DNA of 64,000 nt, taken from sequence record OP889247.1. The stretch is one strand, 5' to 3'. Numbering within the stretch: position 1 is the first letter of the stretch; every line of letters begins with the position of its first letter. Shown in pieces: positions 3,606 to 40,685 of this stretch. The position numbers and the translations under genes were made by a program. The notes under the pieces are model-generated. The model had not been told where the DNA came from, did not search any database, and was given only the letters and a program-made list of their open reading frames with translations.

Positions 3606-3706
3606 TATATTATAACTGACTAGGAAACCCCGGTTAGCCCGGTAGGGCAATTTGTTTGTTATATAGCGGAATGAACGTAGTGAATGACATCCTTCTTTAT
3701 TTAATC
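3606..3706 (+). ncRNA. structured non-coding element, copy A (ncRNA or ssDNA signal; function unknown)
   Basis: Intergenic; near-duplicate of 39069-39161 with two conserved hairpins showing compensatory variation. Confidence 0.5.
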
Positions 3707-3732: not shown

Positions 3733-3756
3733 ATATTTTCAAACATATATTATTAA
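3733..3756 (+). promoter_or_regulatory. phage promoter motif, probably early/vRNAP
   Basis: ATATTTTCAAACATATATTATTAA; one of 8 copies, each upstream of a + strand gene block; resembles the phiKZ early TATATTAC element. Confidence 0.7.
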
Positions 3757-3800
3757 GATGAAAGAGTAACAATGTTAATTAAATCTAGGAGAAGAAAGAT

Positions 3801-4328
3801 ATGACTTTAATTGAAAGATTAGAAACTAGCGGCGATGTGGAAGAAAGTTGGTTTTATTATACCCCCTTACTGACATCGGGCACGCAAGAGGGTAGAGTAG
3901 TTAAGGTTGTTGTGACCGAGGAAAGTATGTGCGAAAATCAGTTTAAACTTCCTATTGTAATACATAGTCTCTCTTGTTCTCATAACTACATGTATATAGA
4001 AGAATCTAAAGCCGGGTATGGGTTTCTCTTTAGTAATGAACCAATATCCATTATGGATATATTTTTAGTAGATCATAAGAGTGCGTTCAACCAGTACGGT
4101 TTCTGGGGAACCATTATCCATGGTCTAGGTTTACTGACGTTAAAACAGACCCATAAAAACATAAAGAAATTTATCCAGTCTAACCAATCTAAACCTATTG
4201 TTACCAATAAAGAGCAAGTTAAGAAGACTTACACGTTTGATCAGATTAAACATCTGGTTAAAGTTGTTCGTGGTGACTTGGATGATGAGATAATTAAACA
4301 GGTCTTGGAGTTGGAGCAATGGAAATAA
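3801..4328 (+). CDS. hypothetical protein
   Basis: 175-aa ORF, AGGAG SD, first gene after promoter motif. Confidence 0.8.
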   Translation: MTLIERLETSGDVEESWFYYTPLLTSGTQEGRVVKVVVTEESMCENQFKLPIVIHSLSCSHNYMYIEESKAGYGFLFSNEPISIMDIFLVDHKSAFNQYGFWGTIIHGLGLLTLKQTHKNIKKFIQSNQSKPIVTNKEQVKKTYTFDQIKHLVKVVRGDLDDEIIKQVLELEQWK

Positions 4329-4684
4329 CTAAAGCTATGTTAAATATGCCCGGATGGGTATTCAGTGGTTTGTTCTATGGTTATCCGCTTTGTTGTATTA
4401 AAGAGTTTAGTGAATTAAAACACCTGCATTTAGATCATTTTAAACTCATAGGAACTGGGTATGTTCCTTGTTCAAAATGTCGATCAAAGAGTAAAGCTGA
4501 GCTGATTAAAGTAATCACTGACAATCGCTTTGATCCTAAACCTTTCCCAGAACAATCTGAATGGGGTGAAAGAGAACAGTTCGTTAAGCAGTTGATAAAG
4601 GAAGGTCTTCCTGATAAATGGAAGATTTTACAACCAGTGTTAAATGAATTAATTAAGAATCGTAAATTAGCTAAAAATAAATAA
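4319..4684 (+). CDS. Cys-rich hypothetical protein (GYPxCC...PCxxC), probable metal binder
   Basis: 121-aa ORF overlapping upstream stop; motifs GLFYGYPLCC and GYVPCSKC. Confidence 0.7.
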   Translation: MEITKAMLNMPGWVFSGLFYGYPLCCIKEFSELKHLHLDHFKLIGTGYVPCSKCRSKSKAELIKVITDNRFDPKPFPEQSEWGEREQFVKQLIKEGLPDKWKILQPVLNELIKNRKLAKNK

Positions 4685-4704
4685 CTTAGTCTAGGGGAAG
4701 AAAA

Positions 4705-5148
4705 ATGTACAAAGCTGATAATCTTGAAGTAACTCTGGGTCAGGTTGATGTTCGTGTTGATCTTTCTGCTCCGCAGGATAGTGTCACTGGTCGTGTTCTT
4801 CATAAACTGATGTATAATAATACCTCTTTGTATGAGCTCGCACCTAACCCATCTGGTTGTCCTCACAATGGTGGTGAACATACCCTTTCTATCACAGGGT
4901 CTCAGGTAGACATTAATGCTTGGTTGGATTTGTTAAGTGAAACCTACTCAGAAGTAAGAATAATGGTCATTAGCGTTAAACGCAAGATCCATAAGGAGTT
5001 TCTGTCTGGTGAATGGCGTAAGTACAACCGAATTAATGTGAAGCTTAAAGATCTTCAATATCTGGAACAGAAACCTCATCAAGACAAACTTGTTGCCGTT
5101 AAATGGTTCCAGAGTAAAGTCGAGAAGTTTGTTCCTGGTAATAAGTGA
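4705..5148 (+). CDS. hypothetical protein
   Basis: 147-aa ORF with GGGGA SD, tiles the operon. Confidence 0.75.
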   Translation: MYKADNLEVTLGQVDVRVDLSAPQDSVTGRVLHKLMYNNTSLYELAPNPSGCPHNGGEHTLSITGSQVDINAWLDLLSETYSEVRIMVISVKRKIHKEFLSGEWRKYNRINVKLKDLQYLEQKPHQDKLVAVKWFQSKVEKFVPGNK

Positions 5149-5176
5149 TGAGATATGTAGTCTAGGAGAGAATACC

Positions 5177-5977
5177 ATGTTTTCAAGAAATAAAGATATT
5201 TTTGTTTATTCCAGTTATTGGAGAACTTGGTCACGTGTTCTGTTGAGAATGGGTGGTAAGTTCAATTATCAACTGGAAGTTGATGTGACACCTGTTAATG
5301 AACAGTATAAGGAATCTTGGGAACAAACCAAGAATATTCGTATTCGTCGTCACTGCACTGTACATGGACCGAGAGATGTCTATACTCATGATCTTCCTGA
5401 TGAAGTCGTAGAGAATATGAATAAACACATCTCTCAGGAAGCTATTGATGTTATTCTTCACTCTGATCTCTACAATCTGATCGATTGGGAACGTTTTGAT
5501 GATCTCCACAATGCAAACGGTGGTGGAGTACATCTCCTTGATTGTATTAAAACCATTACTCCTATCTTTAGATTAGGGTACGCTAATGATCAAGGTAGTG
5601 ACGTTATTAATGGTGATGTTGAATCTTTTTGCAATAAACTCAAAGAAGATTTTGGTAGAGAAATCAACAATAACGAAAGATTAGTCACCGGTTGGATTGA
5701 AATTCAATCTCAAGGTACCGTTTGTATTTACATTACCAGAGATAAAGTGACCGAGGTTTCTACAACACACTTTATAGTCAAGGATAGAAATACCCAATAT
5801 TACGTAAATGCTTTCATGGTTAAGTTCCCCAGTGACTGGTATTATGAAATTAAAGGTCTTGTAGATCAGTTGCTAGGTGGGTATATTGACAAACTGGAAA
5901 TTAATGGCGAGGTCGATACTTATATTGACCAAGCTAAACTTATTTTGGAATACGATATGCTGTGGGGATTAGTATAG
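5177..5977 (+). CDS. hypothetical protein
   Basis: ORF track starts at 5090; start moved to ATG 5177 after AGGAGAG SD. Confidence 0.75.
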   Translation: MFSRNKDIFVYSSYWRTWSRVLLRMGGKFNYQLEVDVTPVNEQYKESWEQTKNIRIRRHCTVHGPRDVYTHDLPDEVVENMNKHISQEAIDVILHSDLYNLIDWERFDDLHNANGGGVHLLDCIKTITPIFRLGYANDQGSDVINGDVESFCNKLKEDFGREINNNERLVTGWIEIQSQGTVCIYITRDKVTEVSTTHFIVKDRNTQYYVNAFMVKFPSDWYYEIKGLVDQLLGGYIDKLEINGEVDTYIDQAKLILEYDMLWGLV

Positions 5978-5979
5978 TA

Positions 5980-6507
5980 ATGAGTGAATTAGAACAAGAG
6001 TTGTCTTTAATTCTTTCTGAATCGGTTGGGGTAAGATCCCCAACCTCTACGGATTGTCAACTTATCGAATACATCGGTAAGGACACACCAAAGAACGTAA
6101 CGTCTTTCAATATAGATAAACCCGTTCTAACACCGGAACAGGAACTTATAAAGAAAGATCTGTTGAATCGACTGGGACTTATTCCACCAGGAGTAACTGT
6201 TTCTATTAAGTCACTTGGATTAGATAAAGAAGAACTAGTAGAGTTGTTTAAACATTTGACTATCACTGGTTCTACTATTCCTAATCGTTCTGTGGTTGAA
6301 CAACCTAAACTGGAGTTCTTCTATACCAATTACAAAGGTAATGAAGAAAGAAGGGTGGTTTCAACCAAAGTCCACATCTGGCATGGTGTATCAAAATACC
6401 ATAAAGATAAACAACATTTCTTAAGAGCTTACGATTACGATCGTGAAGGAATAAGAGATTTTGCTATGCCGGATATTTCTTGTTTCTTACAAGTTCCTGG
6501 ATACTGA
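5980..6507 (+). CDS. WYL-domain protein
   Basis: C-terminal LEFFYTNYKGNEERRVV...HFLRAYDYDREGIRDFAMPDI fits the WYL pattern (Y..G..R.v...wyL.A.D..R...R.F....I); start moved to ATG 5980. Confidence 0.7.
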   Translation: MSELEQELSLILSESVGVRSPTSTDCQLIEYIGKDTPKNVTSFNIDKPVLTPEQELIKKDLLNRLGLIPPGVTVSIKSLGLDKEELVELFKHLTITGSTIPNRSVVEQPKLEFFYTNYKGNEERRVVSTKVHIWHGVSKYHKDKQHFLRAYDYDREGIRDFAMPDISCFLQVPGY

Positions 6508-38996: not shown

Positions 38997-39001
38997 TCTC
39001 T

Positions 39002-39031
39002 CCTTACCTAACCTTAATTGGTTAGGTAAGG
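39002..39031. terminator. hairpin of the TTAATT-loop family
   Basis: CCTTACCTAACC-TTAATT-GGTTAGGTAAGG. Confidence 0.7.
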
Positions 39032-39068
39032 TTTAACAGTATATTAAATTATTTTATTAAATAGATGG

Positions 39069-39161
39069 TATATTATATGTTACCATGGAAACCCCTGGAC
39101 GCCCGGGTAGGGCTTTGATTGTATATTAGCGGAACGTAGTGACTTCCTTTATTCTTTAATC
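39069..39161 (+). ncRNA. structured non-coding element, copy B (ncRNA or ssDNA signal; function unknown)
   Basis: Near-duplicate of 3606-3706; upstream of HNH gene. Confidence 0.5.
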
Positions 39162-39228
39162 AGTAGTCTTTAAAGACAAGAAACTAAAGATAAAAGGAAA
39201 TAAGAAAGTAATAAGAATTCAAATATCA

Positions 39229-39262
39229 AACTCTACTTACCCTTAATTGGGTAAGTAGAGTT
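39229..39262. terminator. hairpin of the TTAATT-loop family, stem nearly identical to 353-386
   Basis: AACTCTACTTACCC-TTAATT-GGGTAAGTAGAGTT. Confidence 0.65.
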
Positions 39263-39317
39263 ACTACAGGTATATTATGTGAAAGTTTGGAACTATTCCG
39301 TTGTCTTGAGGTTACTC

Positions 39318-40685
39318 ATGAATAAACAGTTTTTAACGTTAGATAAACACCCACTTCGTCACGTGCTAATAAAATCTCTTCCGAAGAAACTAGAGTCTAT
39401 AAAGAAAGAATTTTACGACTCGGTTGAAACAGAAGAAAAGTTTATTGCTAGGTTTAAAACCTATTTTAACCACAAACAAAATACAGACATAACCAACCTA
39501 ACTTTATACGATAAAATTTTACTGTATAAGGCCGATCACCCTGATTATGTTTTTTGGACACCGTTAAAGCTAATTCGTAATGGCAACGAGGAAGAAGTTA
39601 AGGTATACGATAGTTACAGCATTAGCACCAATGGGGAAATTTACTCTCATTTAAACCAACTTATAATGAAGGTAAGAACTAAGAAAACTGGTTATAAAGA
39701 ATTATGCATTAAAATACTAACCAGGTCTGTTTTTATTTCACATCACCGTGCAATGATGTCAAGTTTTGGATTTGATATTAAACATCAACATAAATTAAAC
39801 ACATTAACGATAAATCATAAGAATGGTATAAAGATCTGTAATGACTTATCAAATTTAGAATGGATGACAACAGGTGATAACTCTAGAGATAGGTCTATAG
39901 TGATGGGTAAATTAGGTAAAAGATATGGGACTAGACCCATAAAGATTACCGCGTTAGAAGGTATAGAAGGTGTGGAACAAGGTACAGTCTTTTACTTAAG
40001 ACTCAGCACAGATGGGTATAAATACGGTTTAACCCCAGGAATAACCAATAAACCTTTAAACGGCACTGGTTCTTGTTATAATTGTAAACTTGAATACATA
40101 GACTACGAGGAATTACCAGAAGTCGTACAGGAATTACCACTGGAGTTATTATCGCATTTTGAAAAGAAAAGGGCGATGTTTAACGGGACGTTAAAATTAA
40201 AACTATTTCTAACTAAGGAGCTTTGTGGTTATAAAGCCGGAACCATATTTGTTGCCACTAAAGAAAAAATACTTAGTATGGGAGTAGGACACAGTTCTGT
40301 GGCTTCTGCTATCTCGGGAAGCAAAACCTTATTTGGATTTAAGTTTTCTTATCTAAACACTAATACCACTGTGGACTGGTTAGACCTTCCCGATTGCTTT
40401 AAGGAACATTTTGCTAAAGAAAATAAAAGAATGGATCTAATTAAAAGGAAATGGGCTTTAAGTTGCACAGTTGTGAAAGAGATAAACGGATATGAAATTG
40501 GTGAAACCTTTATAGAAACAGATTTGAAAAAACTATTAAGTCTTGGTGTAAGACCTAGTGTTATTTACGGTTCTAGCAAAAGAGGACAATGTTCAAATGG
40601 GTTAAGATTTAATAGAATATATTGTCCAACGCAAATTAATAACAAGCCAACAATACCTCTAGATTTATTAAAACTGATTTCATAG
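39318..40685 (+). mobile_element. free-standing HNH homing endonuclease with three C-terminal repeats
   Basis: SHHRAMMSSF...TINHKNGIKICNDLSNLEWMT...N (HNH_3-type); ATG 39318 after GAGG SD; ATA/AGA-rich codons unlike core genes. Confidence 0.85.

Follow-up and report, generated by a model that had tools for sequence, protein, structure and literature searches.

A conserved, strand-specific two-hairpin element in Aeromonas phage AVP1 and related jumbo phages, possibly a transcription-linked structured RNA

Introduction

Nucleus-forming jumbo phages have their own machinery for transcription and replication, and to our knowledge their non-coding signals are barely known and their replication origins unmapped. 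What, then, is the role of a repeated, structured and apparently non-coding element found between the genes of such a phage? The element that raises this question lies in Aeromonas phage AVP1 (OP889247.1), a phiKZ-like jumbo phage of the genus Ferozepurvirus with a 234 kb genome, annotated with a tubulin-like protein, split RNA polymerase beta subunits, and a phiKZ-like internal head protein. We analyzed a window of 64,000 nucleotides of this genome (record positions 62001-126000); coordinates below are those of the window and features are on the + strand unless indicated otherwise. An earlier reading made from the letters alone, hereafter the sequence-only reading, had described two copies of an intergenic element, copy A (3606-3706) and copy B (39069-39161), each with two hairpins, and had proposed either a functional single-stranded DNA (ssDNA) signal or a small RNA. 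Here, we report that the element is real and conserved and that it matches no described family in Rfam or in our literature search. The reading that we favor, with a probability of roughly 45%, is a small structured RNA or leader of the + strand that would be tied to rightward transcription.

Results

The two copies share a two-hairpin architecture

Every feature described earlier was present in both copies at the position assigned to it. Copy A opens with a promoter-like TATATTAT box (3606-3613) and continues with CTAG (3620-3623), which is conserved in relatives and marks the putative 5' end region of the element. Hairpin 1 (CCGG-TTAGC-CCGG, 3630-3642) is followed by a linker composed of a G-cluster and a T-rich run, GGTAGGGCAATTTGTTTGT (GGTAGGGC..TTTGTTTGT, 3641-3659), by hairpin 2 (G-GA-AT-GA-AC-GTA-GT-GA-AT-GA-C, 3668-3688; the 21-mer GGAATGAACGTAGTGAATGAC), whose tip GAACGTAGTGA occupies 3673-3683, and by a TCCTT box with a T-rich tail (3690-3706). 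The corresponding parts of copy B are TATATTAT (39069-39076), hairpin 1 (CCTGG-ACGC-CCGGG, 39094-39107), the linker GGGTAGGGCTTTGATTGT (39105-39122), hairpin 2 (G-GA-AC-GTA-GT-GA-C, a 13-mer at 39131-39143 with its tip at 39132-39142), and TCCTT (39145-39149). As had been claimed, hairpin 1 keeps its stem between the copies while its loop is altered, and hairpin 2 of copy B is symmetrically shortened, lacking exactly one 4-nt AT-GA/AT-GA unit per arm.

The copies are identical in 77 of 104 aligned columns and reach a global alignment score of 46.5, compared to a mean of -5.8 (standard deviation 4.3) and a maximum of 7.5 for 1500 random windows. The composite pattern GGAAACCCC-N8-16-GGTAGGGC matched twice, against 0.00 matches expected, and nhmmer over the 234 kb genome returned A and B as the only full copies (E = 5e-23 and 4e-14), plus a partial third locus. 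The description of the element as two-copy is therefore correct for the full element. It does not extend to the tip of hairpin 2, as AVP1 contains GAACGNAGTGA at five sites where 0.37 would be expected, three in the three non-coding loci and two within genes; the element itself recurs in at least four further lineages.

That no named family had been recognized was borne out by Rfam 15, which gave 0 matches at the gathering threshold over the whole window, and permissive Rfam scans of the element and of one Paenibacillus locus (see below) yielded sub-threshold noise only. The best permissive match (3622-3695) was to RF01676, the Pseudomonas small RNA (sRNA) P31, with E = 5.8 and a score of 12.7 bits where the threshold is 40 bits; the two share AGCGGAAUGA, and the resemblance is probably due to chance. 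No tRNA or tmRNA was found. A coding role was considered and rejected: ACP1, a close relative, is annotated with a 37-aa open reading frame starting from an ATG inside hairpin 2, an ATG that copy B lacks, and the frame is not conserved.

Both hairpins covary across lineages, and G.A steps occupy paired positions

The nearest relatives of AVP1 are ACP1, pAEv1810, PS1, and PS2. Across these five Ferozepurvirus genomes copy A is 94-97% identical, compared to 85-91% for the flanking 5 kb, so that purifying selection on copy A is visible. Conservation in related jumbo phages, proposed earlier as a check, extends to at least four further Aeromonas jumbo-phage lineages. In the Chaoshanvirus phages CF8, ZPAH34, and AerS_266 the homologue occupies the orthologous position; in AhC3_1 and the Ludhianavirus LAh10 it lies elsewhere, and a further homologue is carried by an uncultured 233 kb phage from IMG/VR. 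A full-element pattern search of IMG/VR gave 0 matches, and protein-anchored searches with both flanking genes gave 0 relatives.

Covariation, the other check proposed, was found in both hairpins among the homologues of four other lineages. Hairpin 1 occurs with five different stems in which pairing is preserved: CCGG/CCGG in copy A, CCTGG/CCGGG in copy B, TTCC/GGAA in CF8, ATCC/GGAT in ZPAH34 and AerS_266, and CCAC/GTGG in AhC3_1. Hairpin 2 reads G-TT-AT-GA-AC-GAA-GT-GA-GT-AA-C in CF8, G-TT-AT-GA-AC-GAA-GT-GA-AT-AA-C in AhC3_1, LAh10, and the second ZPAH34 copy, and GG-TT-AT-GTA-GC-GAA-GC-GTA-AT-AA-CC in ZPAH34 copy A. The sequence-only reading had argued that the symmetric shortening makes sense only if GA/GA forms tandem sheared pairs, and the relatives agree with it, as they exchange the lower GA/GA for TT/AA Watson-Crick pairs, which is direct evidence that GA/GA holds a paired position. 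All 17 tandem G.A steps in the arms are 5'-GA/5'-GA. Since these steps would read C.T on the opposite strand, the element is strand specific.

Blocks conserved in sequence accompany the covarying stems: the G-cluster (GGTAGGG, GGGGAAGGGG or GGGGTAGGGGG), the T-rich run, and the boxes TAGCG and (A/T)TCCTT on the 5' and 3' sides of hairpin 2, the last of these present in all Aeromonas-phage copies except those of LAh10 and AhC3_1 (TCCTA in AhC3_1). The GGG and TTT columns are invariant in 14 sequences from 6 lineages. CTAG lies 3 nt past the promoter-like box in copy A of AVP1, copy B of PS1, CF8, ZPAH34, AerS_266, and AhC3_1. Other structures were tried and rejected: a canonical G-quadruplex in the G-cluster occurs only in the IMG/VR contig L053 and is absent in Ferozepurvirus, pairing of TCCTT with the G-cluster or with a downstream Shine-Dalgarno sequence is not conserved, and an alternative helix, in which the 3' half of hairpin 2 pairs with the 5' end of the copy, is possible in copy B and impossible in copy A.

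A separate observation concerns the exchange of sequence between copies. Copy B of PS1 and PS2 (L013 and L014 1520-1620, compared to L008) contains stretches, TGACTAGG and TAGGGCAATTTGTTTGTATATTAGCGG, that are typical of PS1 copy A, which indicates gene conversion within a genome.

Promoters and terminators around the element

The early promoter consensus of AVP1, ttctataatttttcaaaca[G/T]ATATTA[T/C]TnnnnTG, is present in about 35 copies genome-wide. Both this consensus and a second early-promoter sub-class that we noticed in AVP1, tttaagatccatagattttcaaaccTATATTACTAGAGTG, have the TATATTAT-N6-G layout of the early (virion-polymerase) promoters of AR9 and phiKZ (PMC5312081). The TATATTAT of the element, previously read as a promoter-like core, turned out not to be a canonical early promoter and has only TATATTAT in common with the consensus. 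The copy A box lacks the upstream ttttcaaaca block, the TG at +1, and TATG; TATATTAT is not over-represented in the window (4 occurrences vs 4.4 expected); and no sigma-70-like promoter was found at the element.

A late-type motif, tGATTTTATG(t/a)ac, precedes the AVP1 structural genes 0057, 0058, 0060, 0147, and 0236 (outside the window), usually just past a terminator hairpin. The motif tGATTTTATG is probably the AVP1 late (non-virion polymerase) promoter, with the G of TATG as +1; the late promoter of phiKZ is likewise TATG with G as +1 (PMC7598289). Copy B begins with a similar sequence, the putative late-type promoter TATATTATATG at 39069-39079, in which TATG spans 39076-39079 and the predicted +1 is the G at 39079. 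The B copies of AVP1, ACP1, and pAEv1810 have TATG, as do LAh10 and the third locus; all A-type copies and the B copies of PS1 and PS2 lack it.

Copy B is framed by two terminator hairpins, T1 after AVP1_0115 (39003-39032), directly behind which it lies in a setting typical of late promoters, and T2 at the end of the copy-B unit (39229-39262, no strand assigned), the latter also serving the convergent gene in ACP1 and pAEv1810. Neither hairpin 1 nor hairpin 2 scores as an intrinsic terminator; only T2 does. Downstream of copy B, ACP1 and pAEv1810 have no open reading frame on the same strand, because the HNH endonuclease gene that follows it in AVP1 is an insertion. In other genera a single terminator fills the whole intergenic space at this site, which implies that the copy-B unit was inserted as a whole. 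The tract downstream of copy B is 72% purine, and that downstream of copy A is pyrimidine-rich. In copy B the purine tract pairs with the TCCTT/T-rich segment to form hairpin 3 (39144-39199; TTCCTTTATTCTTTA at 39144-39158 with TAAAGATAAAAGGAA at 39185-39199), which is kept in ACP1 and pAEv1810 with U.G changes, and folding of the copy-B unit gives z = -3.9.

LAh10 has a terminator and then TATATG ahead of the element and a Shine-Dalgarno sequence and then ATG behind it, so that the element is the 5' leader of a gene. Across the wider set of instances described in the next section, hairpin 2 is intergenic in every true instance and is co-oriented with the neighboring genes in 18 of 20 independent contexts. 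Of the two possibilities raised by the sequence-only reading, the context thus favors the one linked to RNA and transcription: the strand bias, the framing by promoter and terminator, the free-standing copy B, and the LAh10 leader together make a transcription-linked function the best reading. The side proposing an ssDNA origin receives no GC-skew signal, yet the tip bears the hallmarks of a DNA mini-hairpin.

If the element is transcribed in this way, copy B would be a free-standing unit of about 185 nt running from the TATG promoter (+1 near 39079) to T2, and its RNA would consist of hairpin 1, a G/U-rich linker, hairpin 2, the A/U-rich hairpin 3, and then T2. Copy A would give rise to a short upstream transcript or leader starting near CTAG (3620) and either ending in the T-rich tail or reading through, ahead of the early promoter at 3746. 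Hairpin 2 would be the working part, as its arms tolerate variation, including replacement with sheared G.A steps, and its 11-nt tip GAACGNAGUGA stays constant. An invariant tip on changeable arms would be expected if a phage or host protein recognized the hairpin, and not if the stem were merely stable; the element may serve as a decoy, as a processing or stability signal, or in polymerase control. We infer transcription, the transcript ends, and the binding of a partner to the tip from this arrangement; in phiKZ-like phages, short sRNAs from 5' untranslated regions (5' UTRs) and intergenic regions have been mapped experimentally (PMC11512511).

The tip of hairpin 2 is a wider motif

By BLAST, the tip motif was found in all Aeromonas jumbo-phage genera, in several of them in two or more copies and always unannotated, as well as in the Erwinia Ackermannviridae phages phiEa2809 and Bue1. 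When species-representative genomes were scanned, the 21-mer turned up in prophages of Paenibacillus, in candidate-phyla (CPR) contigs, and in other metagenome-assembled contigs. In IMG/VR the number of matches was about that expected by chance; several groups of matches have a common extended context or complementary arms beyond the search pattern. The C-GTA-G triloop described earlier proved to be one form of C-GNA-G, which is present in 56 of 56 distinct instances with N = T, A, C or G. The stem next to it is GC/GC only in ZPAH34 copy A, AerS_266 copy A, and the second phiEa2809 hairpin, and AC/GT elsewhere. Additional copies within the same contigs have unlike arms (AATGC/GCATT, GTGTTATTAC/GTAATAACAC, and ATTTAT/ATAAAT), and in some arms two Watson-Crick pairs alternate with tandem GA, for example ||ss||ss||ss in L046.

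Pairing was quantified in 30 hairpins that had been pre-selected for at least 5 pairs and whose 3' arms were partly dictated by the search pattern. Pairing cells amounted to 77.7% vs 67.5% in shuffled sets, and the covariation score was 0.347 vs 0.172, with 0 of 500 shuffles as high, statistics that overstate independence because of the pre-selection and the pattern-fixed arm. Slid registers of the same set gave 23-43% pairing.

The surroundings of the motif differ between hosts. In phiEa2809, which is transcribed by the host polymerase, a sigma-70-like promoter (TTCTCA-16-TATAAT, 10/12 matches) is followed by two such hairpins and a GC hairpin, and in IMG/VR group 3 a GC hairpin also comes after hairpin 2. 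In the Paenibacillus prophages the element lies upstream of an operon with DnaC- and DnaB-like genes. That unrelated phages, prophages, and a giant virus all carry the 11-mer suggests that they either have a partner in common or have repeatedly converged on a single fold of unusual stability. When the literature was searched for the 11-mer, only unrelated primer sequences came up.

Two contigs deserve mention in their own right. L046, a 4 kb IMG/VR contig that encodes poxvirus-type VLTF3 and A32-like proteins and is hence a giant-virus fragment, carries four tandem purine-rich hairpins with the tip GAACGNAGTGA (2677-2887, - strand), and this array lies between a stop codon and the TATAAT box of the next gene. 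In the Pirellulales metagenome-assembled contig L063 (4860-4975), the 21-nt hairpin GTTATGAACGAAGTGAATAAC abuts the 3' end of what, as read by eye, is an apparent tRNA gene with a long variable arm. The 3' ends of tRNA genes are typical boundaries of integrated elements.

The third locus and the neighboring genes

The partial third locus lies outside the window, at record positions 156883-157339 (157.2 kb; L005 6880-7340), in a conserved non-coding region of 450 nt that is also found in CF8 (L074) and ZPAH34 (L025). Its parts are, in this order, a TATATTATATG box, three direct repeats of iteron type (GGGGTCCAnnGGTCAAG), a copy of hairpin 2 with TCCTT, a tract rich in purines, and, immediately before the next gene, a long stem that resembles hairpin 1 and ends in GGGTAGGGG-TTTGTTTG. 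The iteron-like repeats are confined to this locus, which may represent an origin or a non-coding RNA of greater length. One 21-nt sequence, ATAAGAATGAACGTAGTGAAT, is perfectly repeated, with one copy in the third locus (L005 7170-7190, +) and the other antisense in AVP1_0172 (L005 15079-15099, -), so that a transcript of the third locus would be fully complementary to the AVP1_0172 mRNA. A BLAST search of the other genera found no in-gene counterpart of the AVP1_0172 copy.

Both full copies adjoin variable genes. The genes immediately to the right of copy A (3801-6000) vary among the five Ferozepurviruses, and the non-coding region is kept; AVP1_0064 is found in AVP1 only, and in PS2 the homologue of AVP1_0067 directly follows the copy A region. 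The gene cluster 3' of copy A has its own canonical early promoter, ttttcaaacaTATATTATTAAGATG, outside the element at 3735-3760 (box at 3746, predicted +1 G at 3760). To the right of copy B, the HNH endonuclease gene AVP1_0116 (39318-40685) is preceded by an early-type TATATTAT-N6-G promoter of its own (39271-39285); the gene is shared by AVP1, PS1, and PS2, is absent from ACP1 and pAEv1810, and looks like a free-standing mobile endonuclease inserted beside copy B. The terminators of AVP1, at 38999-39037, 39229-39262, and many other genomic sites, are long perfect hairpins that share the loop TTAATT(GG) and are followed by a minimal T run or by none, as in CTCTACTTACCC-TTAATT-GGGTAAGTAGAG.

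Discussion

Several observations weigh against a structured RNA or leader. Copy A lacks a terminator as well as a promoter of the canonical early or the TATG type. Nor do the copies point to a consistent cis target, as the genes downstream of them differ between phages. In nearest-neighbor folding, the element alone shows no excess of stability over shuffled sequences, with z about 0 for RNA and DNA and for both strands (+0.05 to +0.8 on the + strand), and RNAalifold on the MAFFT alignment reaches only -2.5 kcal/mol. The arms lack an RNA-type wobble signature, with G.T and A.C occurring 4 times each, a balance that we discarded as uninformative for telling RNA from DNA. Finally, the tip signature (C-GNA-G with N free, in a T-GA-A context) is that of unusually stable DNA mini-hairpins that are much less stable as RNA (PMC13037366). 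Energy models would be expected to overlook the element if it owes its stability to G.A pairs and a GNA loop; such features are poorly modeled, and conventional models are known to fail for the GNA mini-hairpin motif (PMC13037366).

The last of these points leads to the strongest alternative, a serious rival even if we consider it somewhat unlikely, namely that the element is an ssDNA signal on the non-template (+) strand. The 11-nt tip would fold as a GNA mini-hairpin upon transcription or unwinding and would be read by a polymerase or another factor, as an ops/RfaH-like pause or recruitment site, or would stabilize a replication-priming R-loop of the kind found at T4-type origins; for the latter variant, a layout of promoter, G-clusters, displaced-strand hairpin, and an AT-rich or purine-rich tract is conceivable. 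The closest structural precedent is the DNA mini-hairpin d(GCGNAGC), known from the complementary-strand origin of phage G4, ssiA of RSF1010, and the early promoters of N4 (PMC13037366, PMC4496689). Like the element, it has a C-G-closed G-N-A loop in which any N is allowed, sheared G.A pairing is implied in both, and standard energy models miss the stability of both; copy A of ZPAH34 contains an exact GCGAAGC and AerS_266 contains GCGTAGC. The two differ in that the mini-hairpin is a 7-nt unit, whereas the element mostly has an AC/GT stem and an invariant tandem GA/GA, giving 11 nt, lies on the sense strand of double-stranded DNA phages, and may act as RNA.

The second precedent is ops/JUMPstart, read by RfaH, in which a C-GGTA-G hairpin forms on the non-template strand in a bubble of 10-11 nt (PMC5995543), a size that the 11-nt invariant tip matches. 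The element and ops have in common a bubble-sized mini-hairpin, a place in leader regions, conservation of both sequence and structure, and co-orientation with operons. Nevertheless, the ops consensus GGCGGTAGnnTG is not that of the element, GAACGNAGTGA; ops has a tetraloop, and the element has a triloop on long complementary arms in a phage with non-canonical RNA polymerases. An ssDNA signal would also accommodate the sense-strand bias as well as RNA does, the G-clusters just 3' of the promoter-like box in every lineage, the purine tract after copy B, the iteron-like repeats of the third locus, the proximity of the Paenibacillus copies to replication genes, and the lack of a G.T excess in the arms. 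It is opposed by the 5-12 bp complementary arms, superfluous for a signal confined to a bubble, by the pyrimidine-rich tract after copy A, and by the lack of any Rfam match even though the JUMPstart/ops family is in Rfam. The GC skew of AVP1, monotonic and tracking gene orientation, is uninformative and contains no replication-origin signal, and an RNA product explains more simply why a terminator follows copy B and why the element is a leader in LAh10.

An improbable alternative is a purely cis-acting leader, an attenuator or riboswitch-like device in which hairpins 1 and 2 and the linker would act as the sensor and a downstream hairpin would set read-through into the next gene. LAh10 has the order that such a device calls for (element, hairpin CTACT..AGTAG with a T-rich run, Shine-Dalgarno sequence, ATG), the conserved unpaired blocks between covarying stems would suit a sensor, and premature-termination sRNAs from 5' UTRs are common in phiKZ-like phages (PMC11512511). 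This arrangement breaks down elsewhere, as copy B has no downstream gene in ACP1 and pAEv1810, an early promoter separates element and gene in copy A, CF8, ZPAH34, and AerS_266, and the downstream genes are unrelated among phages. Under the broader reading of a small structured RNA or leader, the phiKZ-like sRNAs (sRNA005 of 201phi2-1 and the phiKZ sRNA upstream of gp182; PMC11512511) are the nearest comparison, being short non-coding units of nucleus-forming jumbo phages whose position is conserved across genera. They lie upstream of gp182, and the element lies next to the homologues of AVP1_0063 and AVP1_0115, a distinction made by position and not by sequence comparison. A resemblance to protein-binding RNA motifs also has to be qualified. 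K-turn and K-loop motifs have tandem sheared G.A pairs by a short stem or loop and are typical protein-binding sites; the element shares the tandem GA with the K-turn and has no 3-nt bulge on either strand between the GA pairs and the AC/GU stem, and its 7-nt ACGNAGU loop could conceivably act as a K-loop.

It is quite improbable that the element is a mobile or recombinogenic intergenic cassette kept for gene shuffling without a product of its own. Its model would be the Promoter-early stem-loop (PeSL) cassettes that Arbiol, Comeau, Krisch and co-workers reportedly described in 2010 in T4-type phages, in which promoter and hairpin repeats flank variable genes. The likeness lies in repeated intergenic promoter-hairpin modules beside variable genes, and it is strengthened by the position of both copies at breakpoints of gene content (the genes right of A, the HNH gene right of B), by copy B being a genus-specific insertion, by the conversion of PS1 copy B from copy A, and by the spread of the tip with different arms inside several genomes. 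However, PeSL hairpins are ordinary Watson-Crick hairpins without an invariant tip, whereas the element has a fixed 11-mer with covarying arms in unrelated virus groups; a cassette would leave unexplained this invariance across phyla as well as the G.A-based strand specificity. The chance is close to negligible that hairpin 2 is a promoter of the N4 type, formed on the template strand and directing the divergent gene AVP1_0063 leftward: the N4 virion RNA polymerase does use hairpin promoters of 5-7 bp whose 3-nt loop has a sheared G:A as its closing pair (PMC4496689), and a divergent gene faces copy A and its counterparts in CF8, ZPAH34, and L053, but the AVP1 annotation, with no dedicated protein search made, lists split multisubunit beta-like subunits only and no N4-like polymerase, and the hairpin is on the sense strand in 18/20 contexts, and on that of its neighbors in copy B, LAh10, AhC3_1, the Paenibacillus prophages, and phiEa2809.

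Whatever its mode of action, the element offers purifying selection, covariation, and a defined functional strand. As copy B is free-standing and naturally missing in sister genera, its deletion should be easy. The architecture of hairpin 2, in which Watson-Crick pairs alternate with sheared G.A pairs below a GNA loop, is known in DNA biophysics and has rarely been documented as an evolutionarily conserved element. A more speculative proposal, which we regard as distinctly unlikely, is that the tip GAACGNAGTGA is a previously unrecognized signal of jumbo phages, Ackermannviridae, Firmicute prophages, CPR-associated elements, and a giant virus, a bubble-sized sheared-G.A mini-hairpin in non-template DNA or nascent RNA that a polymerase or some broadly conserved factor would read to pause, terminate, prime, or recruit. 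If true, it would be a viral counterpart of ops that is independent of any single polymerase family.

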